A stretch of DNA of 64,000 nucleotides from Takakia lepidozioides (GCA_030704615.1 CM060732.1:61628001-61692000), one strand, 5' to 3'. Positions 2,803-41,555 are shown, counted from the first letter of the stretch. Translations and numbers: made by a program. Notes: generated from the sequence alone by a model not told the origin.

Positions 2803-2816
2803 ATAGTAACATAGTA

Positions 2817-4724: not shown

Positions 4725-4745
4725 GTCCCATGTCTTTCATTTCTT

Positions 4746-5441
4746 TTAATGTGGCAATAACCAAAACTCTCTTCTGTAATATCTCTCGTATATGCCTGGG
4801 TTTCTTTCAAGCTTCAATGCACCCTTGGCTATACTAGAAGTCTCCGTTACCATATAACCATAGGGCAAACAAGTCTGGAAAGCTATTCTTGGTGTGAGTT
4901 TGATCCACAAAATATCCTTTGGAATCCAATTCTTTACCAGTACAAGCTCTTCATGCATATGAGTATAAACATTCACCTTTCTTTCCTCCCAGCCTTCAAA
5001 CTCTACTCGCTTAATGGATAGCAATGCTATCACATAAACCAGTGTTGGTAACCAACGTGCTCTTCCTCTACATGCCACCTGATAAATCTTTATCACTCCT
5101 TTCTCCAGACCCCATTCAGGGTCAGCATCATGCACTCTCTTAAGAATGTTTTCTTTACAACCATCTGGCAATTCCAAGAACCTCTGAAAGAATCGTTTGG
5201 ACAATCTTTCCTTCTCAGTTTCACAAGGAATTTGATTCACATCAAATTCTTTAATTCTCCAACCACCATGATCCCACCAGATGCCTGTCACATCTGGTTG
5301 TTCATGACCCAGTTCCCCAGTATGGTCGCCAACTGTCGCGCGGCTTTTACTCACCCATCCCTTCGCTATCCGAGGCGGAAACTCCAAGATAGAAGAGTTG
5401 GAAATCTCTAAGCACTCAGCCCGCTCAGAACAATCAGTCAT
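4746..5441 (-). CDS. Extra ORF0 (231 aa, unknown function) upstream of gag, starting inside the LTR
   Basis: Intact ORF; conserved in copy B (50698-51388, frameshifted there); ATG at 5441 lies within LTR 5334-6296. Confidence 0.7.
   Translation of the reverse strand: MTDCSERAECLEISNSSILEFPPRIAKGWVSKSRATVGDHTGELGHEQPDVTGIWWDHGGWRIKEFDVNQIPCETEKERLSKRFFQRFLELPDGCKENILKRVHDADPEWGLEKGVIKIYQVACRGRARWLPTLVYVIALLSIKRVEFEGWEERKVNVYTHMHEELVLVKNWIPKDILWIKLTPRIAFQTCLPYGYMVTETSSIAKGALKLERNPGIYERYYRREFWLLPH
5314..5331 (-). promoter_or_regulatory. Primer binding site, tRNA-Arg-like
   Basis: TGGCGACCATACTGGGGA 2 nt after the LTR-terminal CA; similar to the TGGCGACTCCACTGGGGA tRNA-Arg PBS type of plant non-chromoviruses. 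Confidence 0.8.
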
Positions 5442-6296
5442 GACCTACAGCTAGTGTATCATTGGGGTGTTTCCTATTTGTTTTCCTTCCCGCATTCATG
5501 TTAGCTAGTTACCTTACTGTTGGTAATTAAGTATCAGTTTGCTTCAGCAATCTATCGGATTCCATCAACTCATCCATTCATTCCACAGCTTCACTCAGAT
5601 CTCTCTACACAGTATGAGTATGAAGTATGTATCAGATTAATATCTATCAAGTATCAGGCTGAAGCCATGGAGTCTCTAATCTGCTCTACATTACAACTCT
5701 TCTGCTTGCATTCATCAAGCATCAACAGATCGTCCTCCTCCTACTCCGTGCTCTCCCTCTTTCTGCTCAGAGATGCGCTCTCTGCCTCATTTCCCCCCAG
5801 TGATGTCCGAAGTCCCCCCAAGAAGTCATCATTTTCCAGTCCTTGCTCCCGGCTTTATCTTCCTACCCGTTGTTCTAACCGTTTCCCTCACTAACCGTCA
5901 TCCGTGAACTAACATGTTCCATTCGCAAATGTTGTTCCCCACAATCGTTCCCTGTCCTGCTATCCGTTCCCTATGGTCGTGACAGCTGTGTCAAGCTATG
6001 AATGGCTGTGTGACTGTGTTGGGCTGTGACGGATGTGTCGGCTTTATCGGACTGTGACGGGCTGTGTGGGACTGTGACGAGCTGTGTTGGCTGTGACGGG
6101 CTGTGTCGGACTGTGACGGGCTGTGTTGGCTGTGACGAGCTGTGTCGGGCTGTGTTGGCTGTGACGGGCTGTGTAACCCCCCCCTAAAGTGCGCTGCTGT
6201 CACCCCTAAGGCTCCTGTTGGTCTCAGTCTGTGCAAAAATTAAGGGTACCCCACAGATCCCGTAAAAGTGCCTAAGTCTCAGACAGTCCTCTAACA
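5334..6296 (-). repeat. 5' LTR of copy A (about 963 bp) with internal (GT)CACAGCC tandem array at about 5985-6175
   Basis: TG...CA termini; homologous to LTRs 49928-50804 and 61984-62937. Confidence 0.92.
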
Positions 6297-7511
6297 CCAG
6301 CACCAGCAAGGGTGCCAACACCTGTCAGTGGGCAGAAGGAAGGGCCACAGATGGCGTTACAACCAACACGGGCAAAACCTCTTTTTTCCAATATATTCAC
6401 GAAAAGGGGATCCCGATGTACACATTAGCCAATTTGAGCACATGTGTATAGTGAACAGTGAGAATGGCGATGATGCCAAGATGAGATTGTTTCCTTGTTC
6501 ACTTATCAAGAAAACAAGTGAATGGTATGCAAGATTCCCTGATAATCATTTCCTAACCTGGAATGGCTTGAATACAACATTCCGAAATAGGTTCAGGACA
6601 AGTAAAACTGAGAATGAAGTGTATGGAAGTTTACAACAGTTAAAGCAAAAGAAGCATGAAACTGTTGAGGAGTATATGGAAAAGATGGAATTGATGATGA
6701 AAAAGCTGGCTGCTGTACCAGCACCAGGTTTACAAAAGACTTGGTTTGTGAGTGGACTAAGACCAGAGTTGCAGAAGAAAGTGGATATGTTACCCCATAA
6801 TACAGTGGAGGAGGCATTTGAAATTGCAAACAGAATTGAGCAATTGAGAATGCTCAGGAGAGAGAAAAGGGATGATGAGGACTCTGAGGATGAGTCAGAT
6901 GAAGAAGAAGAGCAAGAACTGAAAAGGAATAGTAAGAGAAAGGAGAAGTTGAAGAGGGATAACTATGAGAAAAGATTAGAAGAAATCTTGAAGAAGTATG
7001 CCAGAGAGGCTGCAACACATTGGAGGAAGGGTGTTTGGTGTGTAAAGTGCCAGAATGAAGGCCATACCACCACTGAATGCCACATGAAGGAGAAACACTG
7101 TACTATCTGTAAAATGGATAACCATTCTACTGAGAATTGTTACTACAACAGAAGGACAACAGCTAGAGAACCTAGGCAAGTAAGGGTGCATCAAGTGCAG
7201 CCCCAGCCAAGAAGAAACAGTGATCAGGACCACTATGGTAGGCCTGGTGGTTATAACAATGGCATGGAAGGGAGAGGTAATTCAAGAGGGAATTACCAAG
7301 GGAATTCCAGAGGCAACTATCAGGGTAATCCAAGGGGGAATTACCAGCTAGGGAATCAGGATTACAAAAATAATCCAAGAGCAGACCAAGGGCGAGGACC
7401 CAATGGTGAAGAACTGTGTTACTATTGTAATCAACTAGGACATCGCAAGGCAGCCTGTTCATTCTGGATTAGACACCAGAATGAGATGAGAGCTCCTGTG
7501 AATGAAGGCCC
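6297..7511 (+). pseudogene. gag fragment of a third copy (C) of the same Gypsy family, cut at its 5' side by copy A and truncated at its 3' side
   Basis: Sequence immediately after the LTR terminus matches copy B gag from about 52185 (ccagcaccagcaagggtgcc) to about 53394 (aatgaaggccc). Confidence 0.92.
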
Positions 7512-7577
7512 TGCCCCCACCACAGGGGCAGCCCCTCATGTGTCCCGACCCCCTGCCCTCAAGGCAAAGGGCCGCGA

Positions 7578-10500
7578 CATCACACATGTATTCGCTCTTG
7601 CAAATAGCCGTAAAAAAAATCCAAACGATTTATGACGATCTATATTCCGGACATTCAGTCCACAAGAGCTGGAAATTGTTAATTCGATGTTTGAACACAA
7701 TTGGATCCCAACAAGAGATATCGGCAACAAGGGCAGTCAGTTACCTGATGAAATATCCAGACCATTTGACAGACCACCAATTTGCATATTTGCCGTGGTA
7801 TAGTTTATCGGCATGGATCCGTGAACAAGAACAATTTCGATCGAACGAAGATGGAAACAACGATTTGAACAACACACCTGACGATAACGACCCCGAAAAC
7901 ACCTTCGAAATGTTCAAAGTCGAAAGATCCGAACAGAATGATAAGTTGATTATGTATAATTTTCACATCGACTACCAGAGCAGGCCACACAAGTTCGGGG
8001 AAATGTCACCTTACGAGTTATGCAGCAAATCGTGCAAGGTGAAAAACCCGTACTATTACAAATTCATGCATGAACATCCGCAAAGTGACACCCACAGTGT
8101 ATACGAATCCCAGGTAACCAAAGTGCCAGTAATACAAAGTTACAAAATACCTTAAAAAAAAAATGATGCGACAACGTACGCTCGCGCTATTTATATTCTA
8201 TTCATGCCATGGAGATCCATCCACGACTTAAAGCTAAGATCACAACAAAGTTGGGAAGACACTCTCGACGAACTATATCCAATATGTTCGGAATTCAACA
8301 GGAAAATCATCACAAATATCGACATGCTCCACGAATGCAAAGAATCACGAGACTCCGACAGACTGTTACTGAATAACGAAAATCCAGATTTTGATGAGAT
8401 TCCAGAAGACATCAACATCGACCCCTTATACAATGAGATGCCAGACAAAATGCACGATGACGATGACGACGATATATATGTGGACGACAATTCAGCGTCG
8501 CAACAACATACAGAAGACATAGTCACAAAAAGCCAGAAATTACAAATCGAATATCTCATGTGCAATACAAGCGAAAATCAATATGTGACCGAGGTTACCA
8601 ACAAGCTCGTTACGGATGCCAACGGAAAAATATCACCACAACACCATACCGCACCAAAAATAGGAATGATCCAAACTGAAACAAAAAAATCAAATAGAAC
8701 CCAAATCAATAAATGGTTGAAAACATTAGGCGAATCCAAAAATCCGCCCACCGGCATTGACAACGACCTGTACAAGTTTGCAAATGCAACTCAGTCATCC
8801 AAAAACATTAACCTCCAACACAAAAATCCAGAATTGAGAGAAATTCCAAAAACCGAATCAATGGATATTACAGATGACAATAGGCAAGAGCCTATGAGAA
8901 AACTACATACGGCCTAACACAATCATATTGACCCAGCAAATGAGACAAGCCCATGATCTACAATATGCGAAATTGCTACAGAATCTACGTGAAGACAACT
9001 TCATCCAAACGGATTTCGAATTATTACAGACAAGATTCATGTCGAACATGAAAATCAACCTCTTCAACGAACCATGGGATAAAGCAACGTACATTGTACC
9101 TCGAAACCAATTAAAGAACGCCATCAATCACCAAATGATAGAATACTACACACGTAAATCTAACCACGCATCCTACACCTACAAGAAGCACGCACTCCGC
9201 GACGAGTTCCAATTTGCAATCCGACAGACTGTACCCGGGAATAGAAGCCACAACCTTCTTCCATTTTTGAGATTGTACAAGGAAATGACAGTCATGCTAA
9301 CCGACAATTTGTATCCTAGATTGGGGCTTGTAAACGGTGCAGTCGGACAAATAGTGGGGATCTCAACAACAGAAGACGATTGGATCGTACGGGAAGATAT
9401 TTTAATGCACCCGCCAAATCACGTATTAATCGACTTTGGGGAATTCATCAGTCAACACCAAACATTGAGTAGCATAAATTTAGAAAATCTCCCAGAAAAC
9501 GTAGTGCCCATCACACCCGTTTCAAGAACGTTCGATTATCACCACATGGAGGATGAACTGAAAAAACCAAAGAAATTCAAAATCAGCAGACGTCAATTGC
9601 CTCTGATACCCGCATACTGCCTAATCGACTACAAAGGCCAAGGCAAAACTTTCGACATGATAATCATCGACTTGCAAAAACCACCAGATGGACACCCCTT
9701 GAACTTGCACAACATTTACGTCACACTGTCTCGTTTGCGTTCCCTACAAGGACTAGTAATACTTCGGGACATTAAGTTCGAAGACATCCAAGGAGCCAAA
9801 TTCAGGACAGGCTCACTAGAGTTCATGGCTCCACAAGCCGATTGTAATGTCCAAAAACAAAAATCACATAAGGCCACGAAACACATCAGCACAGTGAATA
9901 CAAACCTTGCCGCCAAAACACTCCAACCAAGACACACGTACAGAGAAATAAAAATGCCAACCAATTCTGAAGCCGAACATCCCACACCGATAGAATCAAA
10001 TGAAATCCAAACTTGCTCAGAATTAGCTCCCACACCGCTCGAAATCATAGAAATCGATTCCGAAGACGAACAATCCGACACAGAAAACACAGATTTGCGC
10101 CAAGAAACATATTGGCACGAATATCTCCTATTGACAACGCACGACGAACAAATCATCTTGGATGGCAATGGATGGTTGTGTGACCAGCATTTGGCGGCCG
10201 GGATGCAAATACTATTTGATCAGGAACTGGAAACACAAAACTACCAGCAACATGCGTATTCGACTCTATTGGGCAGAACGAAATACACCAAGAAGTGTTT
10301 GCAGCACGTGTTCGTCAACAACAACCATTGGATTCTAACAATGATAAATCCGAACAAAACTAATTGTCAATGTACAGTGTTTGATTCCAGCATGCCCACG
10401 GATAAGAAGCTACCGAACGAAATAGAACAACATCTCGCGAAATTAATCCCAGTCCCACAATTCAATTATTTCTATGCCGATGTCATGCAACAGACTGACG

Positions 10501-10655
10501 GTTCATCTTGTGGTGTATTTGCAATAGCTTATGCCACGGATATAACATTCGGATTAAATCCCGCACATTCCCGATACGCAACATCCACCATGAGAACCCA
10601 CTTGAGAGATTGCATAAACAATCGAAGAATTGAGCCATTTCCAAAACAACATTAA
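7578..10655 (+). pseudogene. Helitron RepHel remnant: post-Rep region, PIF1-like helicase C-half, C-terminal Ulp1/C48-like cysteine protease
   Basis: QQEISATRAVSYL..PDHLTDHQF (post-Rep motif); LTQQMRQ, RQLPLIPAYCLIDYKGQGKT, IYVTLSRLRSL (PIF1 motifs IV-VI); WLCDQHL..HWI..FDS..QQTDGSSCGVFAIAYA (C48 His-Asp-Gln-Cys). Walker A/B region is absent near 8917. Confidence 0.88.
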
Positions 10656-11024
10656 ATTTAAAATGGTGTAGTGTGCGTGGGATCCAGCCCAATGTTGGGA
10701 ATGCCATAGGTGTGTGCGTTGGTATTTGTTGTTTCCTTCGAGGCTCAGAGTCGGGATGCTATGGAGGGCTTGGGTTTCGTTTCTCGGGGGGGGGGGGGGG
10801 GTGTGTCTGCATACCGGGCAGAAAAGGGGGTTCAAATCCCCCTCACTTCTTGGGCATAGATAGGGGTATGCCTATAACGGTTATACTTTTGCATTGTTCC
10901 TCATGTTTTCTGCATAGTATATATTTCCAATAATGAAAAGAAACACTGTATGCGTGGGGATGACCAATTGAACGTAGTTCTGAGAATTTGTCGCTAGTAG
11001 TGCGGAGCAACGCGAAGCCCTAGT
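7578..11024 (+). mobile_element. Helitron-like (Helentron/HLE2-type) element unit 1, 5'-truncated derivative of an autonomous element
   Basis: RepHel coding remnants followed by a subterminal region and a 3' end (GTCGCTAG + hairpins + CTAG|TT) shared with units 2-4. Confidence 0.85.
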
Positions 11025-11053
11025 TCTAGCGACGACCGAAGGTCGGAAGCTAG
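10990..11053 (+). repeat. Head-to-tail junction 1: 3' end (subTIR + twin mini-hairpins + CTAG), TT, 5' end (subTIR + hairpin)
   Basis: gtcgctag tagtGCGGAGCaacGCGAAGCcctag tt ctagcgacgaccgaaggtcggaagctag; the same string recurs at 17680-17744 and inverted at 41492-41555. Confidence 0.85.
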
Positions 11054-12239
11054 TTTAGAGTAGAGCAGGTATAGGGTGCCATAGTGCCATGTCATCATCG
11101 CCACATCATCGTAGCCAGGTCATCGTCGTCGTCAATTTCTTTGGAATCTACCCGGACGGCCCGCATGAAATATGCCAATAGAAATCGCCGCGCCAACGTC
11201 TTTGGAACTGCCCGCAATGCCCGGATCTTGATCTTCTTGAACTGCAGGAGCTTTGCATTTTCCACCATCGTTCACCTTGCAAGCACAGGCATGGAAAGCT
11301 TGAAGGAGCAGGGATCAAGTGTGTGTCCAGATTCATCCAAAAAGGCCGGATTTCAAGCTCCAGATTACCTATGATTCGAAAAGACAACAAATGGGGAGGA
11401 GTTTCTTGCAGACGGAATCGGAAGCTTTCACTCGTGATTGGGTGGGAAAGAAGAAAAGTGCAGCTTAGATTACACCTTACTTCCTTGTTTTAGACCTGCA
11501 CAGTGAGTCTCCATGATTGATTTTCCATGAGCACGAAGGGTATGTCAGGTTGTGTCTGGTTGCAAAAGTCCCACATCTGCTTGAAGCTAAACCCAAGTTT
11601 CAAACCTAATCTTAGATTGACTAGATTGTAATTGTTGTCTGTCCGCCATAATCTCCCTGCAACGAGTGTTCACTGGAAACAATAAATGCAAACTGTGAGT
11701 CTGACATTCAAAGCTGAAGGTTGCTCTTTTTCCATGTTTCAGCCTTCTTGGTCATTATTTTTGTGACCATTGTTTTGTTAAACGTGGTGATAATGAAAGA
11801 GGGGAGTGCCCATAGACCTGAGCATGAGCCCTTTAAGCAACTTGAAGAAGGAATAGCACTTTCTGTCCCAGCAAATTGAGCTCTCTTTCTGTTTTTGCCT
11901 ATAGATCCATCCTCATCAAAGGCATTCAATTGAACAATTTGCCTGATTTTGGTGATATCAGGTTGCAGGTTGTTGGATCCCAGCAAAATTCCATATCCAG
12001 GAGCAATGGTGCCATTGGGACTGGGCAGATGGGTAGCACACCCAGCGTGAGCAAGAGTGAAATCCAATTTTGGATGTTGCTTGAATGCAGTTATGGGACT
12101 GAGGTGAGTGGGCGGGCTGGTGATCAGAAGCGCAAATTGTCAGACATGCTTGGACCTCCCTGTAGCAAAGAGGACCTAGAGCTCTTCTATCAAGCATTTT
12201 CGGAAATATGGCAGAGACTGGAAAAAGGTATCTTATGAC

Positions 12240-15200
12240 CACAATTAACTTGTTGAGATTGTGTGCATTTGCGATGCGTGTGCAAGCCTGGCAGCTCTGG
12301 AAAAGGGCGAAAGAGGTCCATGGCGACATTGTCAGAGCTGCAATTGTACCAATTGTCATTATGAACAATACTCTCGTGGACATGTATGAAGGGAGTGTTT
12401 GATAGTATGGCTGAATGAGATGTGGTGTCGTGGAGTGCGATGACAATGCGTGTGCAAGCCTGGCAGCCTTGGAAAGGTGCAAAGAGGTCCATGGTGACAT
12501 CGTCAAATCTGGAATTGTACCCGATGTCATTCTGAACACTGCCCTGCTGGACATATGTCAAATGTGAGTGCATCGAGGATGCAAAGGGAGTGTTCGACAG
12601 TATGGCTGAATGAGATGTGGTGTCGTGGAGTGCGATGATTGCAGGATATGCTTTGGAGACCTATAAGCAAATGTTGCGCGAAGGGGTGAAGCCCAACCGC
12701 ATCACATTTGTTTGTGTTTGCAATGCATATGAAAGCCTGCGAGCCCTGGAAAAGCAAGGACAATGTGGTGAGGGCACCTTCTTCGTCGACCTATTTCAGC
12801 CTGTTTTGCGCTCTCATCAAACTCAGCCTTGAGATGCATATTGAATTTTGTAAGTTAGCTCGTTGGGTGGATCTGTGGTGGTTTGGAATGACTTTGACAA
12901 GTAACTGCCGATGTGGCAGCAGGAAAGTATCCAAAAACAGATAACAGAGATGAGGATCTACCAAGCATGGGTGTGGTACGAATGCTTTGGAGACCTATGA
13001 GCAAATGATGCATGAAGGGGTGAAGCCCCACCACATCACGTTTATTTGTGTTTGCAATGCGTGTGCAAGCTTAGGAGCCCTGGAAAAGGGCAAAGAGATC
13101 CATGATGACATCGTCAAAGCTGGAACTGTACGAGATGTCATTCTGAACACTGCCGTGGTGGACATGTATGCCAAATGTGGGCGTATTAAAGATGCAAAGG
13201 GAGTTTTCATTTGGACATGAAATGATTGACACTGGCCTTTTTATGCAGTTGGCTGTTTCACTTGGTAACAATAATACTCTTCACTATCTCGAAGGAGAAG
13301 ACATCAACGTCCTACTGCGACAGGTCTGTGCTCCAGTTTTAATTCAGATCTAGGAGCAAATGTTGCGCGAAGGGGCGAAGTCCAACCACATCACATTTGT
13401 TTGTCTTTGCAATGCGTGTGCAAGCCTGGGAGCTCTGGAAAAGGGGAAAGAGGTCCGTGGTGACATTGTCCAAGCTGGAATTGTACCAGATGTCATTCTG
13501 AACACTACCCTGGTGGACAGGTATGCCAAATGTGGGTGCATTGTCAGACCTGCAATTGTACAAAATGTCATTCAGAACAATACCCTTGTGGACATGTATG
13601 AAGGGAGTTTTCGACAGTATGGTTGAACGAGATGTGGTGTCGTGGAGTGCGATGATTGTAGGATATGCACAACAAGGGTGCGGGATGGAGGCTTTGGAGA
13701 CCTAGGAGCAAATGTTGTGCGAAGTGGCGAAGCCCAACCACATCACATTTGTTTGTGTTTGCAATGTGTGTGCAAGCTTGGGAGCCCTGGAAAAGGGGAA
13801 AGAGGTCCGTGGTGACATCGTCAAAGCTGGAATTGTACCTGATGTCATCCTGAACACTGCCCTGGTGGACATGTATGCCAAAATATGGGTGCATTAAGGA
13901 TAAGAATGGAGTTAATTTCAACACCATGGTTGAACGAGATGTGGTGTCATGGAACGCGATGCTTGCAGGGGCGTGGGATGGAGGCTTTGGAGACCTAGAT
14001 GAAGCCACATCACGTTTGTGTGCATTTGCAGTTCGTGTGCAAGCCTGGCAGCCTTGGAAAAGGGCAAAGAGGTGCATTGTTGCATCGCCAAAGCTGGAAT
14101 TGTACCCGATGTGATTCTGAACAACACCCTCGTGGACATGTATGCCAAATGTGGGTGCATCAAAGATGCGGATGAAGTGTTCAACACTATGGCTGAACAA
14201 GATTTGGTGTCATGGAATGCCATGCTTGCAGGATATGCACAGCAGGGGCGCGGGATGGAGGCCTTGGAGACCTATGAGCAAATGATGGGTAAGGGGTGAA
14301 GTGTGACCACATCACGTTTGTGTGCGTTTGCAATGCTTGTGCAAGCTTGGCAGCCCTGGAAAAGGGCAAAGGGTGCATGATGACATCATCAAAGCTGGAA
14401 TTGTACCAAGGTTGCAATGCGTGTGCAAACCTGGGAGCCCTGGAAAATGGGAAAGAGGTCTATGGTGACATTGTCAAAGCTGGAATTGCACCAGATTCAT
14501 CCTAAACATTGCCCTGATGGACATATGCCAAATGTGGGTGGATCGAGGATGCAAAGGGAGTTTTCAACACTGTGGTTGAAAGAAATGTGGTGTCCTGGAA
14601 CGCTATGCTTGCAGGGTATGCACAGCAAGGGCACGGGATGGAGGCCTTGGTGACCTGTGAACAAATGATGGGGGAAGTGGTGATGCCCTCATGGAGTGCA
14701 ATGATTGCAGGATATTAAAGTGGAGAACAGCCTTCTTGACGCCAAATGTGGGAGTGGAAAAGATGCACGTCAGGTTTTTGACAAAATGCCTGAACGAGAT
14801 GTGGTCTCATGGAATGCCATGATTACAGGATATGTTGAGCATGGCTATGCTGAAGAGGCTTTCAAGATACAAGCAAATGGAACTGGACGCGATGACACCG
14901 TACAGGGTCACATTCGTTTCTGTTGTCAATGCATGTGCCAATCTAGGGGCCCTGGAAAAGGGCATGCGGGTCCATGTTGATATTAAGAAAGCTGGGGTTG
15001 TGTCATATATTAACTTGGACAATGCCCTTGTTAACATGTATGCCAAATGTGGGAGTGTTCACGACGCATGTCAAGTGTTTGAAAATATGGTTCAGCAAGC
15101 ATGGAATGCCATAATTGCAGGATATGCTCAGCATGGGTGTAGTACAGAGGCCTTCCAACTATTTGAATAGATGCAGCAGGAAGACTTGAAGCTAGATGGT

Positions 15201-16270
15201 ATCACGGCCTCACTCCTACAGTGGAGCATTTTTGCTGCATTGTGGACCTTCTTGGCCGTGTAGGCCGATGAGATGAGGCAGAGGACTTCATCAACAAAAT
15301 GCCAATTGAACCAGATGCTCTGGTTTGGGGGACCTTGCTTGCTGCTGCTTGAATTCATGGGGATGTGGAGGTAGCAGAACATGCAGCAAAATCTCTTCTC
15401 AAGTGCGATCCCAACCACCATGCAACTTATGTGCTGCTATCCAACATCTACGCCGCATCTGACAGGTGACAATATGACACAACATGATGTGGTTTCATGG
15501 AGGACCATGATTGCAGCATATGCTCCGCATGAGTATGGCAAGGAGGCTGTTGAGATGTATGAACAAATGCAAAATAAAGGGCTAACGCTCAACAACGTCA
15601 CATTCACTTGTGTTCTCAATGCATGTGCCAGCTTGGGAGCCTTGGAGAAGGGCAAAGAGGTCCATGCTAACATCATTAAATCTGGAATTGCATGCTACAT
15701 AAGAAGACTACGCTTGTGGACACGTATGCAAAATGTGGGAGCATAAAGGATGCGCGTCAAGCTTTTGACAATTGGCTAAACGAGAGATAGTATCATGGAA
15801 CACCATGATCGCAGGGTGTGCTCAACATGGATGTGGCAAAGAGGCTTTCGAGATATACAAGAGATTGCAGTAAGACAGGCTGGAGGCTTTGGAGACCTAT
15901 GAACAAATGATGGGGGAAGTGGTGAAGCCCGACCACATCACGTTTGCGTGCGTTTGCAGTGCGTATGCAAGCCTGGCAGCCCTGGAAAAGAGCATGGTTG
16001 CATCGCCAAGGCTGGAATTGTACCAGGTGTAGTTCTGAACAATCCCCTCGTGGACATGTATGCCAGATGTGGAATGCGATGATCGCAAGATATGCCCAGG
16101 GAGGTCCTGCAACTATTTGAAGGAATGCAAAAGAATGGCTTGAAGCTGGACAACCTTTATATGTGTTCTCTCTGCATATAGCCACACCGGCCTACTGAAT
16201 GAAGGAAGACGGTACTTTGATTCCCTGAGTCAAGATCATGGTATCACTCCAACAGTAAAGCACTTTGGCT
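12240..16270 (+). pseudogene. Mosaic of PLS-class PPR fragments (P-L-S triplets, partial E domain)
   Basis: Repeated [67 protein letters not shown] motifs with many stops and frameshifts. Confidence 0.92.
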
Positions 16271-17232
16271 GCAGACAAGGAGGCCTTACGCAACTTCATC
16301 AGCAGTGCAATGCTGTTTGGTGAGGACATTCTTAGACTGTCACTTCCTTCAATTGATTCCTTAAAATCAGGTGGCTGGAGGGGGTTTATGAGTTTGAATC
16401 AGGGGTTAAATGTATTGAAAGACAGTGTTGATATCAAGGACGAGAGCTTCATGGCAAATTGCAAGGCTATGGAGCAGCTCCTGGTTGACCTTAGTAGGCA
16501 ACAAGTTGAGAAGGTACCTCCTCTGTTGTGAGAGAGAGGACAGAGCACATGCCTCCATCTTTAAAGCCTTGCAAGTGGCTTTGGCTAATGTGATGCTCAT
16601 ATGCTCACAAATCTGGCGAGATGTGGCTGTTTGTTTTCGTGAAGAGGGCGTATCAACTAGAACAGAATGAGAAAGAGAAATGAACTTTATAACATCCACA
16701 GAGAGGTAAAATGTTTTTCGCATAGTATACATTTCCAATCAAAAGATACAAAGAGACAAGACAGTTTCAAGAGAAATGATCTTTTTTCATAAAAAAACAA
16801 TTGCTTAGTCATTGATAATTGTTTTCAATGTTTTACATAAGTTTTTTCAAAGATTTACCAAACTACAACTTTAATAAATTCCATATTTTCTACGTGTATA
16901 GGAGTTTTGGCCAAAAGTTTAACTGCTATTATCTGGAAAGAAATCCCATGTTTCTTCTTTCGGAGGTTTTGCCAATATCTTGAGTGGCACTTGATGGCCA
17001 CAAAGTCTCCCATATTCACAAACGATCCCGCAATTTTACCGGGCAGAAAAGGGGGTTCAACTCCCCCTCACTTCTTGGGCATATATAGGGGTATGCCTAT
17101 GACGATTATACTTTTGCATAGTTCCTCATGTTTTCTGCATAATATATATTTCCAATTATCAAAAGAATCACTGTATGCGTGGGGATGACCCACCCCTTTT
17201 TGTGCCAATTGAACAGTAGTTCTCATTATTCG

Positions 17233-17464
17233 CACATCAGCTGGCAGCTCAGCTGTTAAGTGCACAGTGTGTCGCCCTGGTGGTTGGGGGTTCAAACCCG
17301 CTGCCCTGCCTGGTGTGTGGATTGTTCATGACCGGTTGGTCTGGTGGTGACGTTTCCCACCTGTGTGCCTAATGGCTTATCTGAGTTAATTTTTCCCCCT
17401 CCTCAAGGGCCTGAATTGTGAGCAGTCGTTCCCAGGTTTTCTTTAAATAAATAAATAAATAAAT
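17233..17464 (+). mobile_element. tRNA-derived SINE with (AAAT)n tail
   Basis: A-box-like GGCAGCTCAGCTG (about 17243), B-box GGTTCAAACCC (about 17289), (AAAT)n tail at about 17445-17464; no clear TSD. Confidence 0.6.
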
Positions 17465-17679
17465 TCTCAACGACTTCCGCTCTACACAAAACAAATGCTA
17501 AATCCCTCCCCCTCACTTCTTGGGCGTAGATAGAATTAGCTGCATCAAACAAGAGACGTGACATGATAGCTTGGGCAACACTTTGCTTCTGAAAAACAAT
17601 GAAATACGGGATGTTTGTATATAACACCACGGGGATAACCCACCCCTTTTTGTGAAAATTGAACATAGTTATCAGAATT

Positions 17680-17744
17680 CGTCGCTAGTAACGCGGAGCA
17701 ACGCGAAGCCCTAGTTCTAGCGACGACCGAAGGTCGAGAGCTAG
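17680..17744 (+). repeat. Head-to-tail junction 2
   Basis: cgtcgctagtaacgcggagcaacgcgaagccctag tt ctagcgacgaccgaaggtcgagagctag. Confidence 0.85.
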
Positions 17745-18059
17745 TTTAGCGTAGAGCAGGAATAGGGTGCCATAGTGCCACATCATCGTAGCCACGTGTC
17801 GTAGCCACCTGTCGTCGCCACGTTTCGTACGTCGTCAATTTCTTTGGGCCCTGCCCAATCTGCCCGAAAATAACTGGGAAAAAAACCCGGATAGATGATG
17901 CCCCCGCGTTCTTGATCGCGTTTACAAGGTTCTTGGAAGAGTCAGCTTGGTCTTACGCCGTGTTTCAATCTCTTTCTGCACCGTGGTGGTTCTCACAGAC
18001 CAATCTGGCATTACCTGACTACAGACACAAGCAGCACACAGAATGTGGAACCTTTGACC

Positions 18060-21000
18060 AATGGTACGTGAAGGGGTGACGCCCACCAAGGTCACGTTCG
18101 TTTCTGCTCTCAGCAGCGTGTGCCAGCATAGGTGCCCTGGAAAAGGGAAAACAGGTCCAAACTGACATTTTGAAAGCTGGAATTGCACCAGATATCATTC
18201 TAGAGGCTGCCCTTGCTGCCATCTATGCCAAGTGCGGGAGCATGAAGGAGGCCCGTTGAGTTTTCGTCAATATGGCTGGGCGAGATGTGGTTTCATGGAG
18301 TGCGATGATTGCAGGATATGCTCAGCAAGGGTGTGGTCAGGAGGCCTTGGAGACCTATGAGCAAATGATATGGGAAGGGTGGGTACCGGACAAAGTCACA
18401 TTCACTTCCGTTCTCGATGCATGTGCCAGCCTAGCAGACGTGGAAAAGGCCAAAAAGATCCATGCTGATATTATCAAAGCCAGAATTGAGCCACCCGACA
18501 TCCTTGAGCGCGGATGGGTTTCACGCAATATGGTGACGGTACCCTCTTCTTCGACCTATTTCAGCCTGTTTTTGCCTCTCATCAGACTAGGCCCTGAGAT
18601 GCCTGTTATCAGAATCAGCCCTAAATTTTCATGTTGAATTCTGCAAGTTAGCTGGTTGACTAAACCTTTGATAATTTGGAATGACTGACATGAATACTGC
18701 CAATGTGACAATAGGAAAGTATCCAGAAACAGGTAACAAAGACGAGAGCTGTGGAATGAATACTTTTCTGACCCCTGTTAATGGTGGGACAATCGAGGCA
18801 AAAAAGGTAAATGCCTGTTGGATTACAGAGAGTAGCAGATGCAATTGAGCATAGGAACTAGTGTGATAAGTTGAGTTGGGTGTTTCCTAGAACAAATCTA
18901 GGCTGTCATTGTCAGCTGCTAGCAGCAAAGCAAGGATGTATGCATGATTTGTACATAGGCATGGATAGCTGAAGGAGCAGGGATAGAGTGTGGGTCCAGA
19001 CTCATCCAACAGGGCCGGACTTCAAGCTCTAGATGACCTATGATTCCCTGTGGATCAACAGCTACAAGAAACCTGCATGGGGAAATGGTCAACTAACTAG
19101 CGCAACATAAAGAGTGCAGTCTTAATATTCAGTGACAAGCTGCCATCACACCCCATCGATTCATCAGCTCCTGACAACGGGTGTTGCACATATATTACTA
19201 TGCTCAAATTTATGGGCATATACCGTTACCACAACTTCTGAAAGAGGATCAAGAGAGGGAGTCCACAATGCCTCTTCTGGCACTTCTGGGCATGTGAAGA
19301 TGCTTTGTGAGGCAAGCAGACTGAAAGAGGCTCTACAAACTTTAAACCAAGGAGGAATTTCAGCAGATTCAGATACGTATGTTTGTCTCTTGCATAAGTG
19401 CATCAAGATGAAAGGCCTTGAAGCTGGAAAGCAGGTGCACACGAGGGGTGAAGCCCATCCACATCACGTTCGTTTGTGTTTGCGGACTCAGAATCAGATC
19501 CTTGAAAACCGCTTCTTCCGCCAGGACTTAACCTGTTTGACAGGGCAATCCTGCTTCCAAGATAGAGTCGATTAACTTAGGGTATGTGTTTTTAGTCCTA
19601 CATTGCAGCTGACCCAACCATCTGACCTTGAATTCCTCTCGTCTGGAGGGAGAGATAGAGAGAGTATTCCTAAGACGTTGTTTGCCGTAGCCTTGTGGCC
19701 ATTGACTCCGCGCCCAGTTTAAACAATTGATCCGGGTTTTCCAGATATCCTCTAGAAATCCCTTTACACAAGCATCAACCTGCTGTGTGTGGTTTGCCCA
19801 ATAACTAGGCCCCAAAAGGGCCTGGGCGTTTGGCTCAGCCTCGAGACTTTCAAAGTTGGTAAACAGAGGTACAGGCGTATGAGCAAATGATGCGCGAAGG
19901 GGTGAAGCCCAACCACATCACGCTGAACAGGATGTGGTGTCCTGGAATGCGATGATTGCAGGATATGCCCAGCATGGATATGAGCTGGAGGCTTTGGAGA
20001 CCTATGAACAAATGATGGGGGAAGGGGTGAAGCCCAACCACATCACGTTTGTGTGCGTTTGCAATGCGTGTGCAAAGCCTGGCAGCCCTGGAAAAGGGCA
20101 AAGAGGTCCATGGTGACATTATCAAAGCTGGAATTGTATCAGATGTCATTCTGAACACTGCCCTCGTGGACATGTATGCCAAATGTGGCAGCATCGAGGA
20201 TGCGAAGGCAGTGTTCAACAATATGGCTGAATGAAATGTGGTGTCATGGAACGCGATGCTTGCAGGGCATACACAACAGGGGCGCGGGATGGAGGCTTTG
20301 GAGACGTGTGAGCAGATGATGGTGGAAGGGGTGAAGCCCGACCACATCACATCTATGCGTTTGCAAGCCTGGCAGCCCTGGAAAAGGGCAAAGAGTGCAT
20401 GGTTGTATCGCAAAAGCTGGAATTGTACCAGATGTGATTCTGAACGATATCCTCGTGGGCATGTATGCAAAATGTGGGTGCATCGAGGATGCGGAGGGAG
20501 TGTTTGACAGTATGGCTGAACGAGATTTGGTGTCGTGGAGTGCGATGATTGCAGGGTATGCACAGCAAGGGCGCGGGATGGAGGCTTTGGAGACCTATGA
20601 GCAAATGATGGGGGAAGGGGTGAAGCCCGACCGCATCACGTTTGTTTCCGTTTGTAATGCCTGTGCAAGCCTGGCAGCCCTGGAAAAGGGAAAAGAGGTC
20701 CATGGTGACATCGTCAAAGCTGGAATTGTACACTGCCCTAGTGGACATGTATGCCAAATGTGGGTGCATTGAGGATGCGAAGGGAGTGTTTGACAATATG
20801 GCTGAACGAAATGTGGTGTCATGGAACGCGATGTTCGCAGGATATGCCCAGCATGGTGTCATAGGGAGGTCCTGCAACTATTTGAGGGAATGTAAAAGAA
20901 TGGCTTGAAGCCGGACAGTATCACCTTTATATGTGTTCTCTCTGCATGCAGCCACTCTGGCCTACTGAATGAAGGAAATCAAGATCATGGTGTCACTCCG

Positions 21001-24000
21001 ACAGTAAAGCACTTTGGCTGTATGGTGGACCTTCTTGGACGTGCGGGACAACTGGATGAGGTAGTGGATCTGATTAATAAGATGCCAATCAATCCAGACG
21101 TTGTGGTGTGGAAGGCCTTGCTTCGTGCCTGCAGAATCCATGGCAATGTGGAGATGGCTGAACGTGCGGCAACATCTATCCTCAAATGGGATGAACACTA
21201 GGATGCCGCGACTTATGTGTTGCTATCAAACATCTATGCTGCAGCTGGTAGGTGGGATAATACTGCAAAGGTGAGAAGAATGATGAAGGTTAGAGGGGTT
21301 AGAAAGGAGCCAGGTCGCTGCTACATTGAGGTTGGCAATAGGGTGCACACCTTCGTTGTAGATGACATCCCAGAATTAAGGAAATCCATGCTGAGCTGAG
21401 TCTGGGCAGATGAAAGGAGGCGGGGTATGTGCCTGACACGTGTTTGTATTGCATGATGTGGGGGAGGAGGAAAAGGAATTTTTTGTTTGCCACCACAGTG
21501 AGAAGCTGGCCATTGGTTTTCTGTCTGGAGACGAAGGTAGTGGATCTGCCAACATCCAGTCCAACAAGTGAAGTCCTGGCAGAACGGGAAGAGGAGATTT
21601 CAAGTACCTGGATATTAGGCAAGAGGAACTGACCCTGCTAAGATGAAGTTGACTTGGAAGTTGACTTGGAAGCTGACGTGTCCAAGGCCATGTTGGAAGA
21701 GTGCAGAATGTCCGAACAACAGTTAGGCATAAAACCCTGAACTCATTTCCGGTTTGTGACATGGATGAGTGAAGGGCAGCCTTGCGTGTGCAAACCTGGG
21801 AGCCCTGGAAAAGGGGAAAGAGGTCCATGATGAGATCGTCAAAGCTGGAATTGTACTAGATGTCATTCTGAACACTGCCCTGGTGGACATGTATGCCAAA
21901 TGTGGGTGCATTAAGGATGCAAAGGCAGTTTTCAACAATATGCAGGCTGAACAAGATGTGGTGTCGTGGAGCGCGATGCTTGCAGGGTATGCACAACAGG
22001 GAGGCTTTGGAGACCTATGAGCAAATGATGGGGGAAGGGGTGAAGCCCAACCATATCACGTTCCTTTGCGTTTGCAATGCGTGTGCAAGCCTGGGAGCCC
22101 TGGAAAAGGGCAAAGAGGTCCATGATGACATCGTCAAAGCTGGAATTCTACCAGATGTCATTCTGAACACTGCCCTGGTGGACATGTATGCCAAATGTGG
22201 GTGCATTAAGGATGCAAAGGCAGTTTTGAAAGTTCAACAATATGCAGGCTGAACGAGATGTGGTGTCATGGAGCGTGATGCTTGCAGGGTATGCACAGCA
22301 GGGACGTGGGGTGGAGGCTTTGGAGACCTATGAACAAATGATGGGGGAAGGGGTGAAGCCCAACCACATCACGTTTGTGTGTGTTTGCAATGCATGCGCA
22401 AGCCTGGCAGCTCTGGAAAATGGCAAAGAGGCCCATGGCGACATTGTCAGGGCTGGAATTGTACCCGATGTCATTCTGAACAATGCCCTCATGGACATGT
22501 ATGCCAAATGTGGGAGCATTGAGGATGCGAAGGCAGTGTTCAACAATATGGCTGAATGAAATGTGGTGTCGTGGACCGCGATGCTTGCAGGGTATGCACA
22601 GCAGGAGCGCGGGACGGAGGCTTTGGAGACCTATGAGCAATGATGGTGGAAGGGGTGAAGCCCGACCACATCACATCTGTGCGTTTGCAAGCCTGGCAGC
22701 CCTGGAAAAGGGCAAAGAGGTGCAAGGTGACATCGTCAAAGCTGGAATTGTACCAGATGTCATTGTGAACACTACCATAGTGGACATGTATGCCAAATGT
22801 GGGTGCATTAAGGATGCAAAGGGAGTTTTCAACACTATGGCTGAACGAGATGTGGTGTCATTGAAGACGATGCTTGCAGGGTATCCACAGCAGGGACGTG
22901 GTATGGGGGCTTTGGAGACCTTGATCAGATGATGGGGCAAGGGGTGAAGCCCAACCACATCACGTTTCTATGCATTAGCAATGCGTGTGCAAGCCTGGCA
23001 GCTCTGGAAAAGGGCAAAGAGGTCCATGGCGACATGGTCAAGCTGCAGTTGTACCAAATGTCATTATGAACAATACCCTCGTGGACATGTATGAAGGGAG
23101 TGTTTGACAATATGGCTGAATGAGATGTGGTGTCGTGGAGTGCGATGATTGCAGGATATGCACAGCAAGGGCACGGGATGGAGGCTTTGGAGACCTATGA
23201 GCAAATGATGTGCGAAGGGGGTGAAGCCCAACTACATGACGTTTGTTTGCATTTGCAATGCGTGTGCAAGCCTGGCAGCCCTGGAAAAGTGCAAAGAGGT
23301 CCATGGTGACATTATCAAATCTGGAATTGTACCCGATGTCATTGTGAACACTGCCCTGGTGGACATGTATGTCAAATGTGGGTGCATCGAGGATGCAAAT
23401 GGAGTGTTTGACAATATTGCTGAACGTGATGTGGTGCGTGCATTGAGGCTGGACTTGAGGGGGATGTCCCTGTGGGGACTGCCCTTGTCAGCATGTATTG
23501 CAGGTGTGAGAGTTTGATGGATGCCACCCGAGTATTTGACGTGCAATGCCCAAGCGAGATGGGCTCTCGTGGACTGCTATGATTGCAGGATCTGCTCAAC
23601 ATGGTCATGGTCTTTTTAACTCTTTCAGCGCATGCAAAGAGAAGGCATGAAGGCAGATATTGTCTCTTTTATTATTGTCCTCAACACTTGTGCTGGCCCG
23701 GAGGCTTTAGAACGGGGCAAGCAGCTCCTTGCCAGCATCATCAAAGCTGAATTTGAGTCAGATGTTGGACTCGGGAATGCCCTTGTCAGTATGTATTGCA
23801 AGTGCGGGAGTGTGATGGATGCACTCAATGTGTTTGTCAGAATGCCTAAGCGAGATGTGGTCTCATGGACTGCGATGATTGGAGGATGTGCACATAGTGG
23901 TCATGGTGAGGAGGCTTTCAAACTCTTTCGACAAATGCAAAGAGAGGGTGTGAAGCATCCCTGGAACAGGGCAAGTGGGTCCATGCCTACATTATCAAAT

Positions 24001-25545
24001 CTGTGTGTGAGTCAGATGCTACGTCAGGAATGCCCTCATTGATTTGTACTAGTGTGAAGCCAAATGAGGTCACATTTATTGGTGTTCTCTCTGCATGCAG
24101 CCATTTGGGCCTTGTAGATGAAGGTGGTCATTATTTTCAATCCATGTGTCAAGAGCATGGCATTACACCAACAGAAAAGCACTGCACCTGCATGGTTAAC
24201 CTCCTTGGCCATGCAGGGCGCTTGGATGAAGAAGATTTTATTGCCAACATGGCACTCAAACCAGGTGCTTCAGTGTGAGGGGCCTTGCCCGCAGAATCTA
24301 TGGAAATGTGGAGTTAGCAGAGTGTGTTGCAGAATGTATTTTCAAGGTGGAATCACAAGATGGATACATTTGCCATTGGAGATAGATCTCACCCACAAGC
24401 AGAGGAGATCTATGATGCGTTAGAGAGATTGACTTGGCAGATTAAGGAGGTGGGATATGTGCCTGAGACACGCTTTGTGTTGCGTGATGTGGATCAGCAG
24501 ATGAAGGAACAGGCTCTTTACCACCACAGCGAAAAGCTGGCCATAGCTTTTGGGCTCATTAGCACACCCCCTCAAATACCAAATGTCATTCTGAACATTG
24601 CCCAACGCGATGCTTGCAGGGTATGCACAACAGGGGCGCGGGATGGAGGCTTTGGAGACCTATGAACAAATGATGGGGGAAAAGGTGAAGTGCAACCACA
24701 TCACGTTTGTGTGCATTGGAAATGCTTGTGCAAGCCTAGCAGCCATGGAAAAGGGAAAAGTGTGGGTCTAGATTCAGCATCTGCGGCACAATTCATAAAA
24801 TCAGGCACTGCTAATGAAGGCATCTTCTTCAAAACATTTCACCCTGTTTTCCCCCCTTATCGAAATCGTCCTTAAATTTTCATGTTGATTTCTGCAAGTT
24901 ACTGGTTGAGTGAACCTTTGATAGTTGGCAATGCGTGTGCAAGCCTGGCAGCTCTGGAGAAGGGCAAAGAGGTCCATGGCGACATTGTCAGAGCTGCAAT
25001 TGTACCACATGTCATTCTGAACAATACCCTCGTGGACATGTATGAAGGGAACAATATGGCTGAATGAGATGTGGTGTCGTGGAACTTGATGTTTGTAGGG
25101 TCTGCACAGCAGGGGCACTGGATGGAGGTTTTGGCACCAGATGTTGTGCTTGGCACACTATGTAAACCAAGTAAGACCAGGGAGTAGTTGAGCAGCTCAG
25201 TCTCAACCCTTTCCTAGTGCCAACAAACTCTGATGTGGATTCACGCCAACAAAGGTCTGGAAGCTGGAAAGCAGGTGCACACTCACAAGCATCGCAGGGT
25301 ATGCACAGCAGGGACGTGTGATGGTGGATTTGGAGACCTATGATCAAATTATGGGGGAAGGGGTGAAGCCCAACCACATCATGTTTTTGTGCGATTGCAA
25401 TGCTTGTGCAAGCCTGGCAGCCCTGGAAAAGGTCAAAAGAGGTCTATGGTGACATTGTCAAAGCTGGAATTGTACCAGATGTCATTCTGAACTCTGCCCT
25501 GGTGGACATGTATGCCCAATGTGGGTGCATTGAGGATGCAAAGCA
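18060..25545 (+). pseudogene. PLS PPR array pieces including an N-terminus (about 19260-19440) and two partial E-DYW segments (about 20860-21520 and 24050-24580)
   Basis: PLS triplets; E domain (CMVDLLGRAGQL..WKALL.ACRIHG); PG box VRKEPGRCYIEV; GYVPETRFVLRDV..HHSEKLAIAFGLISTPP; all disrupted. Confidence 0.92.
19485..19868 (+). mobile_element. Probable LTR fragment with degenerate tRNA-iMet PBS embedded in the PPR array
   Basis: Non-PPR insert ending ...gagactttCA aagt TGGTAAACAGAG, resembling LTR-CA followed by TGGTATCAGAG. Confidence 0.45.
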
Positions 25546-26037
25546 AGGAACTTATGTGTACTCTGTTTATGTACTGAGTGGCAAGGAGGCTTTGGAGATT
25601 GTGAATGGGTGATGCCTGGTAGGTGAACCTCATGTGTATTCTGATGCCTGTGCCAGTCTTTGAGCACTGAAAAAGTGCAGATGGATCTGTATGTATTTGT
25701 AAGCCTTTACGTTCTGATGTGAGGTTCTCTGGTTTTATGACAGGAACAAAACAATTGTGAGCAGGAAGTGTAGGGCCAGCTCCTATTGGAATTCCTCAAT
25801 CAGCATAGCTGGGCCTGAATCAAACATCAATGGACTAGGCCTTTCGTCTTCACTAGGTGTTGTTGCTAAAAAAATAACCGATTGTGAGAGGGTCCCTAAT
25901 CGAATGATGCTTCCAAGTACAGGTGAAGCAGAGGAATATAACATACTATTACATCGCACTTTGCACCTAACTTCCCAACAAAGCGGTGTAGCATCAACCT
26001 CGGTCTGAGAGAGAAAGCCACAGTTCTATAGATTAGC

Positions 26038-26544
26038 GTGATTAATTTTAAAGTTGCACTCTTAGGGTTTAATAATTCTCCTAAAAAACCCACCGATATA
26101 TATTTTCATCTGCCCCTGCCTCTCTCTCTCTCTCTCTACACCATACATACAAACAACCATGTCAACGTCGGAAATAGCCGACAGAGGAGAGGCGAGGACA
26201 TGACGTGGATGGGTGGAAACAACATGAGCTTCACGAAAAAGCTCCTAAAAACTAACGCAAACAACAACTTTGGCTCGACGTCCAGTAACAACAAATGTCA
26301 AAAAACAAACAACGACGGGATGTACAATACAATAGAAGTCCTTAACGAAAATGGCCAAAAAATGGATGGAGAATCCGTACGTTCAGGGGATCTCGTTGCA
26401 GTCAAGTGTAACATCCGATATTGGATGAATTTCCATCACAAGAAACACGGGCTTTCATTCCAATTAAAAGGGGTCAAACTGTTGGCCAAAGCACAAGGAG
26501 ACAGAGTGACAACTGGAGCAAAAGCATATACTGGTAGAGCTTAA
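26038..26544 (+). CDS. Putative OB-fold ssDNA-binding protein fragment (T7 gp2.5/Enc34/DUF2815-like)
   Basis: C-half IEVLNENGQKMDGESVRSGDLVAVKCNIRYWMNFHHKKHGLSFQLKGVKLL follows the gp2.5-like pattern; base composition resembles the RepHel ORF; lies 100 bp before the element 3' end. The true start is uncertain. Confidence 0.5.
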   Translation: MINFKVALLGFNNSPKKPTDIYFHLPLPLSLSLYTIHTNNHVNVGNSRQRRGEDMTWMGGNNMSFTKKLLKTNANNNFGSTSSNNKCQKTNNDGMYNTIEVLNENGQKMDGESVRSGDLVAVKCNIRYWMNFHHKKHGLSFQLKGVKLLAKAQGDRVTTGAKAYTGRA

Positions 26545-26643
26545 ATTAGACACATCTAAACGTTCCATGTAAGGGGGCCACCATATTTTCTCTCTCTCAT
26601 GATCCTCGAGTATGGCCCATCCGTCCGGACGTCCTTCTCAGAA

Positions 26644-26682
26644 GTCGTCGCTAGTAGTGCGGAGCAACGCGAAGCCCTAGTT
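26644..26682 (+). repeat. Free 3' terminus of the plus-strand tandem array
   Basis: gtcgtcgctagtagtgcggagcaacgcgaagccctag|tt, not followed by a new 5' end. Confidence 0.85.
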
Positions 26683-26708
26683 GTTTTTTCCATTTCTTCT
26701 TCCAAGAG

Positions 26709-26900
26709 ACAACCAACATGTAGCTCAGTGGTAATGGGCACGTACCACCACGTTGGATGTGGCTGTGGGTTCAAACCACGGTTTGGTGTGTCATGAAGGT
26801 GTCCACCTTCCAGCTGGAAGGCAGTAGCCCTTGTGGTGAAGTGACACCATAAGTTACGCTCCCTTCGGAAGGCGCGTCATACTTTTTTTTTTTTTTTTTC
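26709..26900 (+). mobile_element. tRNA-derived SINE with poly(T) tail and 10-bp TSD
   Basis: A-box TAGCTCAGTGGTA, B-box GGTTCAAACC, T-run at 26883-26899; direct repeat CTTCCAAGAG at 26699-26708 and 26901-26910. Confidence 0.8.
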
Positions 26901-26999
26901 CTTCCAAGAGGTGAGCCTGGACGAGGGAAGGATCTAGACATCACTGGGCAGTACGGAACGTTTCATCCCTCTGGAAACGGAGCAAGGAGCGAGGAAGAG

Positions 27000-41519: not shown

Positions 41520-41555
41520 AACTAGGGCTTCGCGTTGCTTCGCACTACTAGTGAT
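41492..41555 (-). repeat. Head-to-tail junction 3 (inverted orientation)
   Basis: Reverse complement reads ..ctagtagtGCGAAGCaacGCGAAGCcctag tt ctagcgacgacagaaggtcggaagctag. Confidence 0.85.

Follow-up and report, generated by a model that had tools for sequence, protein, structure and literature searches.

The 64,000-nucleotide (nt) stretch of the Takakia lepidozioides genome analysed here (GCA_030704615.1 CM060732.1:61628001-61692000) very likely carries a cluster of Helitron2-type (HLE2) rolling-circle transposons arranged head to tail, in which units B to E are non-autonomous and have interiors derived from PPR-DYW genes. This whole stretch is referred to as the window, and all positions follow its numbering. 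Early-diverging land plants possess thousands of PPR genes, and the route by which these multiplied is still debated. A high-copy rolling-circle family with a PPR-DYW interior would provide a second, directly testable route beside retroposition, and PPR counts in such genomes may include transposon-borne pseudogenes.

Junctions and Element Ends

The cluster is defined by three junctions, each consisting of a 3′-end block, the dinucleotide TT and a 5′-end block (11024/25, 17715/16 and, inverted, 41520/21). The first-pass annotation of this DNA had proposed such fusions at 11024, 17715 and, inverted, 41520, and they were found within one base of those places. A lone 3′ end had likewise been proposed to close the array at 26681. 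This end was recovered as well: likeness to the other ends ceases to the base at CTAG plus TT (26677-26682), and unrelated T-rich sequence lies beyond. The spacers, read directly from the sequence, are as follows.

11024-11025: TT spacer between units A and B (junction J1)
17715-17716: TT spacer between units B and C (junction J2)
41520-41521: spacer between units D and E (junction J3), AA on the + strand and therefore TT on the element strand
26681-26682: TT after the lone 3′ end, with no likeness to the other ends beyond it and T-rich host-side sequence next

TT is found after every one of the four 3′ ends and before every one of the three 5′ ends, and the bases flanking the ends are T/T. 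When the four places are aligned, about 60 bp to the left of TT are conserved everywhere (pairwise range 54-210 bp), while to the right of TT the alignment of the junctions shows conservation spanning 100-130 bp. Profiles of both blocks, searched with nhmmer, recover the three 5′ blocks and four 3′ blocks in the window. They also produce two extra matches, a partial repeat of the 3′ block in the tail of unit B (17176-17232, E = 3.4e-5) and a weak partial 5′ block on the minus strand (44931-44896).

The 5′ tip is formed by an 11-nt terminal repeat, CTAGCGACGAC, which is exact in all three copies (11026-11036, 17717-17727 and, inverted, 41509-41519). Its 3′ counterpart, GTCGTCGCTAG, is exact at only one of the four 3′ ends (26644-26654) and is degraded at the junctions, where it reads tttGTCGCTAG (8/11), TTCGTCGCTAG (10/11) and, in the inverted copy, TTCATCACTAG (8/11). 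The earlier description of the cores as exact inverted repeats is thus accurate for one of the four 3′ ends. With at most one mismatch, the 11-mer occurs five times in the window, against 0.16 occurrences expected by chance.

All three 5′ ends contain a hairpin, CGACC-GAA-GGTCG, nested in CTAG...CTAG and folded from the terminal repeat and the bases after it, with folding z-scores of -2.3 to -3.3. About 65 bp farther in lies a minisatellite of 13-14 bp, present in 2.6, 3.4 and 4.9 copies in the three 5′ flanks. At the other side of the element the inverted 11-mer sits 26 nt inside the 3′ terminus, and the terminus ends in CTAG.

Published descriptions provide a precedent for this arrangement. 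HLE2 elements carry terminal inverted repeats that are short (12-16 nt), with a stem-loop following the right one, and insert between T and T (PMC11417382). In Helitron2 the 3′ repeat is located 20-40 bp upstream of the terminus, and the 5′ hairpins of FoHeli1 and FoHeli2 have a GAA loop (PMC5148889). In the non-autonomous HINEs the 5′ flank consists of a subterminal repeat of 11-12 bp, its complementary repeat and a microsatellite, followed by central tandem repeats, and their 3′ flank comprises a subterminal repeat and a palindrome (PMC7492417). Because the terminal repeat, the GAA-loop hairpin, the minisatellite and the position of the 3′ repeat fit these descriptions, the ends were assigned to the Helitron2/HLE2 layout. 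They had first been called Helentron-like, a label that agrees with the Helitron2/HLE2 layout but does not apply in the strict sense, as no AP endonuclease follows the helicase.

Unit A, a Transposase Remnant

Unit A is the first of the head-to-tail units. It is distinguished by coding sequence related to the RepHel transposases, and its features are the following.

7586-11023, +: unit A, a 5′-truncated RepHel-C48 remnant
7586-10646, + : coding remnant of unit A, by Pfam and tblastn
7586-8347, +: Rep-Hel linker, by tblastn with long RepHel proteins
8928-10655, +: open frame of 575 aa, the C-half of a Pif1-type helicase (2B domain) fused to a C48/Ulp1 protease
10812-11023, +: 3′ flank, with a tail common to unit B, the subterminal repeat 10990-11000 (8/11) and 26 nt ending in CTAG (11020-11023)

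Three long + frames cross positions 7586-10646, and the Pfam and tblastn matches on this strand bear out an earlier report of RepHel/C48 remnants in matching orientation in this unit. The 575-aa frame matches Pif1_2B and Peptidase_C48 (1.2e-5). The C48 domain follows the helicase in frame, extends up to the stop codon and retains the His, Asp and Cys context. This stop codon is located 365 bp upstream of the 3′ terminus at 11023, in matching orientation, and the tails of units A and B share 154 bp and 59 bp at 94% and 90% identity.

Used as a query against 1.84 billion representative proteins, the 575-aa frame gave 565 matches at E <= 1e-10; a separate protein search with the RepHel-C48 frame, in a collection evidently without proteins from the Takakia genome, gave one match, on a contig of 2.3 kb (44% identity). 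Of the eight long relatives scanned, all of them RepHel proteins, seven carry DUF6570, Helitron_like_N and PIF1, and the eighth begins at the Rep domain. Among these eight, P0102 shares the helicase-C48 fusion and P0075 has an AP endonuclease; OTU-like matches are found in relatives P0005 and P0075. DUF6570 has been proposed as an HLE2 marker by the authors of HELIANO (PMC11417382). With the 21 longest relatives as tblastn queries, matches in the window are confined to two + strand stretches, 7586-8347 (the linker between Rep and Hel) and 8901-10646 (the helicase C-half and C48). The + frames of 7400-11030 contain no Walker A motif, and the unit A proteins have no match to Exo_endo_phos (AP endonuclease). 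The 5′ side of the unit is truncated and abutted by a Ty3-type gag fragment. These reading frames mark unit A as a dead copy of the autonomous partner, one that lacks Rep as well as the ATPase half of the helicase with Walker A/B.

Unit A was itself considered as an autonomous copy and was ruled out, since the Rep domain and Walker A are absent.

PPR-DYW-Derived Interiors of Units B to E

The remaining units are located in two groups, B and C on the + strand directly downstream of unit A and D and E on the minus strand. Their features are listed below.

11026-17714, +: unit B, non-autonomous, 6.7 kb
11026-11145, +: B, 5′ flank with the terminal repeat, the CGACC-GAA-GGTCG hairpin and a 14-bp minisatellite (11092-11128)
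11284-11377, +: B, leader piece
12259-16100, +: B, frameshifted PLS arrays, with an E piece (15188-15439) and P2/L2 (16098-16273)
16906-17656: B, tail, made up of a single-stranded DNA-binding protein (SSB)-like fragment (16906-17037, minus strand), a 154-bp block common to unit A (17037-17190) and a 466-bp insert (17191-17656)
17627-17714, +: B, 3′ flank
17717-26680, +: unit C, non-autonomous, 9.0 kb
17717-17848, +: C, 5′ flank with a 13-bp minisatellite (17786-17829)
18080-18634, +: C, PPR fragment, interrupted by a nested repeat (18608-18988)
18954-19125, +: C, leader
19048 to ~21520, +: C, PPR-DYW copy 1, cut just past HSEKLA
21769 to ~24575, +: C, second PLS/E/DYW-N copy, including a 289-bp x 4.4 tandem array (21783-23093)
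to 25609, +: C, further PLS pieces
26038-26541, +: C, SSB-like open reading frame (ORF)
26600-26680, +: C, 3′ flank
44930-41522, -: unit D, ~3.4 kb, the simplest unit
~44931-44896, -: D, remnant of the 5′ flank, minisatellite part only (15-nt exact match GTGCCACGTCATCAT and the end of the block)
~44780-44700, -: D, leader
44747-42093, -: D, near-full-length frameshifted PLS-E-DYW pseudogene ending in KNLRVC...CGDCH...DYW-stop, with a 303-bp x 4.2 PLS array
41617-41522, -: D, 3′ flank, preceded by a 570-bp tail
41519 to ~40300, -: unit E, 5′ 1.2 kb only
41519-41385, -: E, 5′ flank with a 14-bp minisatellite x 4.9, followed by a PPR fragment and the nested repeat

The 3′ end of unit E was not found in the window.

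PPR-like sequence, located by tblastn searches whose query peptides were taken from PPR, E and DYW pieces of the window itself, covers 57% of unit B, 68% of unit C, 78% of unit D and 37% of unit E, and in all four units it lies on the element's strand. Neither unit A nor the other ~40 kb of the window contains any (0%). Units other than the first had been described as filled with PPR, E and DYW pieces, and it had been suggested that PPR enrichment between the ends be checked; within the window both the filling and the enrichment are evident, with 37-78% coverage in units B to E against 0% outside them.

The cargo copies are related to one another in different ways. Copy 1 of unit C (19048 to ~21520) is collinear with the gene of unit D at 86-91% identity. 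Both DYW domains of unit C are broken a few codons past HSEKLA, at break points ~25 bp apart, and unit B contains two gene remnants, neither with a DYW domain. The C-terminus of the DYW domain (CGDCH...DYW) is kept only in unit D; of the five gene copies that can be recognised, four stop short of the end of the domain. Unit E aligns collinearly with the opening 1.27 kb of unit C (77-91% identity) and has the same PPR fragment broken by the same nested repeat; this 5′ composite was therefore copied as a unit. Units B and D share 143 bp beyond the junction block.

All cargo copies contain frame changes and stops, the longest PPR frame being ~170 aa, and reading through the pseudogene of unit D takes seven or more frame changes. 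Upstream of the first PPR repeat, neither an in-frame start nor a targeting peptide was seen in the cargo copies of the window. With no uninterrupted PLS-E-DYW frame among them, the copies in the window are, as far as their reading frames indicate, pseudogenes and not working editing factors. The proposal of the first-pass annotation that this system is a possible engine of PPR-DYW expansion, taken to mean expansion of working C-to-U editing factors, finds no support in the window, where every cargo copy is frameshifted.

The PLS triplet arrays have a period of 289-303 bp and 4.2-4.4 copies, with 84% matches, and across units the triplets are 80-96% alike at the DNA level. Such likeness seems far above that inside ordinary PPR genes, and the high likeness of the triplets points to recent turnover of the arrays. 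Between units, the ends are 82-92% identical and the cargo 80-94% identical. This similarity of end and cargo identity fits their co-amplification, without proving it.

The nested repeat (200-380 bp) is a high-copy sequence found inside the PPR arrays of unit B (12755-12956), unit C (18608-18988) and unit E (40527-40728, minus strand). The copies in B and E are 94.5% identical, and contigs from the public sequencing runs described below have loose ends exactly at 12755 and 12956.

Abundance beyond the Window

Abundance was examined in Logan contigs from four public runs of two studies, which give summed contig depth and not copy number; the depths were used only to reject the ends being confined to one locus. 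Bins of the end blocks have 20-60x the summed contig depth of RepHel bins. The 5′ flank at 11165/11166 is present in 13-26 distinct contigs in three runs and in two contigs in the fourth, whereas the window has three copies. As the distinct contigs of the 5′ block outnumber the window copies, the end family is evidently multi-copy. The transposase appears to be multi-copy too, because up to 12 contigs were found at RepHel positions. Confinement of the end strings to one locus, a check that had been suggested, is accordingly contradicted on the basis of contig depth, with 13-26 contig variants against three copies. Depth is higher again, above that of the ends, at the leader piece (11301-11377) and at the PLS triplets. 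Among the loose ends listed (24 of ~3,600), none falls at 11024-11026.

In each of the four runs the leader has very high depth. Only 76-94 bp of it remain in unit B, and the loose-end consensus from reads agrees with the fuller leader of unit C.

Two scans of JGI metagenome contigs gave no match to the 3′-end string. The N-terminal part of the cargo gene had no protein match in a collection evidently without proteins from the Takakia genome.

Alternative Explanations

A cluster of PPR pseudogenes that underwent ordinary segmental or tandem duplication could also have produced the junctions, each junction being a copied intergenic spacer and the RepHel neighbour a coincidence. Such a history would accord with the ease with which PPR arrays recombine, with the mosaic relation among the units, with the likeness of the D-E to the B-C junction on either side, and with the large inverted retrotransposon copies at both outer sides of the clusters. 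However, the spacer shows a full Helitron2-type end layout, and the RepHel-C48 remnant is located directly upstream of a 3′ end, in matching orientation and with a tail common to unit B. There are also far more contig variants of the end block than the three copies in the window, and the lone end halts to the base at CTAGTT. We therefore consider duplication by itself very unlikely. The same exact stop bears on the possibility that the ~260-bp junction block is a small independent foldback element, or one resembling a miniature inverted-repeat transposable element, with an 11-bp stem, that landed repeatedly in PPR-rich DNA. In the window the 5′ block is always accompanied by a 3′ block, and the two 11-mers can pair with each other across a 28-nt loop; both observations favour this reading. 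A half-block nevertheless ends exactly at CTAGTT (26682), similarity specific to particular pairs extends beyond the block (the 154-bp tail of A and B, 143 bp in B and D, 1.27 kb in C and E), and the minisatellite portion of a 5′ flank survives in unit D, where no 3′ block is near. We consider this explanation very unlikely as well. The exact stop of the lone end, the pair-specific similarity and the partial 5′ flank of D together make both the copied spacer and the small element unlikely.

It is also conceivable that the HLE2 elements are real and that the PPR sequence is not travelling cargo, the elements having inserted into a field of PPR pseudogenes or the likeness having been spread by local gene conversion. 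The contig depths of the PLS triplets and the leader exceed those of the ends, so that many copies of the subfamily may lie outside such ends, and there are signs of local exchange, for example the 94.5% identity between 22894-23440 in unit C and 44388-43839 in unit D. Against this, the PPR sequence is strictly inside the ends and on the element's strand in all four units, with none in flanking host DNA, and the same composite (5′ end, PPR fragment, nested repeat) occurs in C and in E. We regard the chance that the PPR sequence does not travel with the elements as slim.

Several observations weigh against the preferred explanation, a Helitron2-type cluster with PPR-DYW cargo. The 26 nt at the 3′ terminus have a conserved stem of 3-4 bp (GCG-gagcaa-CGC) whose folding energy is no better than that of shuffled sequence. 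A lone 5′ end is absent from the window: all three 5′ ends follow a 3′ end, so that the 5′ boundary was drawn by symmetry to the layout in the literature rather than by comparison of flanks. Junction D-E could have arisen long ago as a duplicate of B-C. The DUF6570 marker is seen in the relatives and not in the truncated copy of the window, whose N-terminal half is gone, and the abundance figures, as stated, are depths of contigs. The left flank of the array has been lost, and no empty site, intact autonomous copy or second genomic locus was obtained; transposition of cargo-bearing units is accordingly inferred.

Proposed Origin of the Units

Under the Helitron2-type explanation, one copy of a PPR-DYW gene with its upstream leader, apparently without start codon or targeting peptide, would have entered an ancestral element. 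The composite may then have been mobilised in trans by a RepHel-C48 partner and amplified with the element, while unequal recombination or replication slippage could have reshuffled the PLS triplets. These triplets would have expanded and been exchanged inside the elements in the manner of the satellite monomers of HINEs. The head-to-tail joints could represent rolling-circle concatemers, read-through of the 3′ signal, or insertion beside an existing end; both kinds of origin have been put forward for tandem copies of Helitron2 (PMC5148889).

A more far-reaching proposal is that this HLE2 family is a main vehicle for dispersed PPR-DYW duplication in a lineage with heavy editing, spreading complete or almost complete editing-factor genes through the genome, reshuffling PLS triplets, on which RNA-target specificity depends, and occasionally yielding new working editing factors. 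We think this unlikely. If it were true, a sizeable share of the thousands of "PPR genes" counted in such genomes would be Helitron cargo.

Neighbouring Features

The SSB-like ORF located before the 3′ end of unit C (26038-26541, +) has a weak match to gp2.5-like ssDNA-binding proteins (phrog_112, E = 1e-3). Another fragment of this protein is inverted in the tail of unit B (16906-17037, -; 59% identity, E = 7e-13). The ORF may be an accessory gene of the autonomous element.

Motifs resembling parts of tRNAs are found at several positions. The tail common to units A and B (10812-10965 and 17037-17190) contains a perfect T-arm, GGGGGTTCAAATCCCCC, the 466-bp insert of unit B (17191-17656) contains a B-box-like motif, and a tRNA-like head follows the array (26720-26790). 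These motifs may be fragments of short interspersed nuclear elements. No tRNA genes (ARAGORN) or Rfam families were called in the window.

On the minus strand, three adjoining ORFs (45390-48461) resemble a transposase of the MULE/SWIM type, with a weak Pfam match to SWIM, and abut the truncated 5′ side of unit D. Their best match by features in a protein atlas scores 0.95 and belongs to MULE clusters. A Ty3-type long terminal repeat retrotransposon (gag, RT-RNase H) is present in two inverted copies (1-7511 and 49932-57500) with 92-95% identity, which bracket the Helitron clusters from outside; unit A is directly adjoined by a further gag piece in inverted orientation (6296-7511). The region between the clusters (26700-40300) looks like ordinary host genes with introns and has no PPR or RepHel similarity. 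One exon in this region (30150-30425) has a translation, …DVPCSGDGT…, that by eye resembles the motif of NOL1/NOP2/Sun-type methyltransferases.

Comparison with Known Systems

The first-pass annotation knew of no description of such a system. HLE2 in land plants, tandem Helitron arrays and gene capture are already published (PMC11417382, PMC5148889, PMC7492417) and are thus not new by themselves. HLE2 was recognised in land plants only in 2024. A text search of the literature found no paper linking Helitrons with PPR-DYW genes, and the PPR-DYW cargo of an HLE2 family looks undescribed. A 2026 kingdom-wide survey of editing factors attributes dispersed PPR copies mostly to retroposition and leaves Helitrons unmentioned (PMC13386178).

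The closest relatives of the window elements are Helitron2/HLE2 elements such as FoHeli1 and FoHeli2 of Fusarium oxysporum (PMC5148889) and HelenSM92 of Sphagnum (PMC11417382). Features common to both are a repeat at the 5′ tip whose inverse is located 20-40 bp in from the 3′ tip, a GAA-loop hairpin at the 5′ end, DUF6570 in the RepHel relatives and tandem copies; the TT at the window ends is compatible with the published TT or T-rich target, and RepHel fusions with extra domains such as Peptidase_C48 have been published. The window elements differ in a repeat of 11 nt rather than the published 12-16 nt, in a very weak 3′ stem-loop and in a truncated transposase; their cargo, a PPR-DYW gene, is unreported in those papers. 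Helentrons in the strict sense have an AP endonuclease domain after the helicase, whereas the partner in the window has a C48 protease there and no AP endonuclease.

Gene-capturing canonical Helitrons (HLE1) of maize, rice and bats are similar in being non-autonomous, in carrying chimeric, co-oriented fragments of host genes and in forming head-to-tail arrays. HLE1 elements, however, begin with 5′-TC and end with 3′-CTRR, have a hairpin located 10-12 nt from the tip, insert at an A/T target and lack terminal inverted repeats. The CTAG of the window fits CTRR, whereas the other HLE1 features do not fit.

The HINE/DINE-1 elements of Drosophila and Cg_HINE of oyster (PMC7492417) provide a parallel for the architecture as a whole. 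In both, the 5′ flank is built from a repeat, its complement a short spacer away and a short tandem repeat that varies, the tandem repeats in the centre keep one orientation, the 3′ flank contains a repeat and a palindrome (weak in the window), and the TT at the ends of the window units is compatible with the TT or T-rich insertion sites of HINEs. HINEs are sub-kilobase and their central repeats are non-coding satellite monomers, while the window units measure 3-9 kb and their central repeats are ~300-bp coding PLS triplets from a host gene. The cluster very likely represents a land-plant HLE2 family with a HINE-like layout, in which a coding PLS triplet replaces the central satellite.

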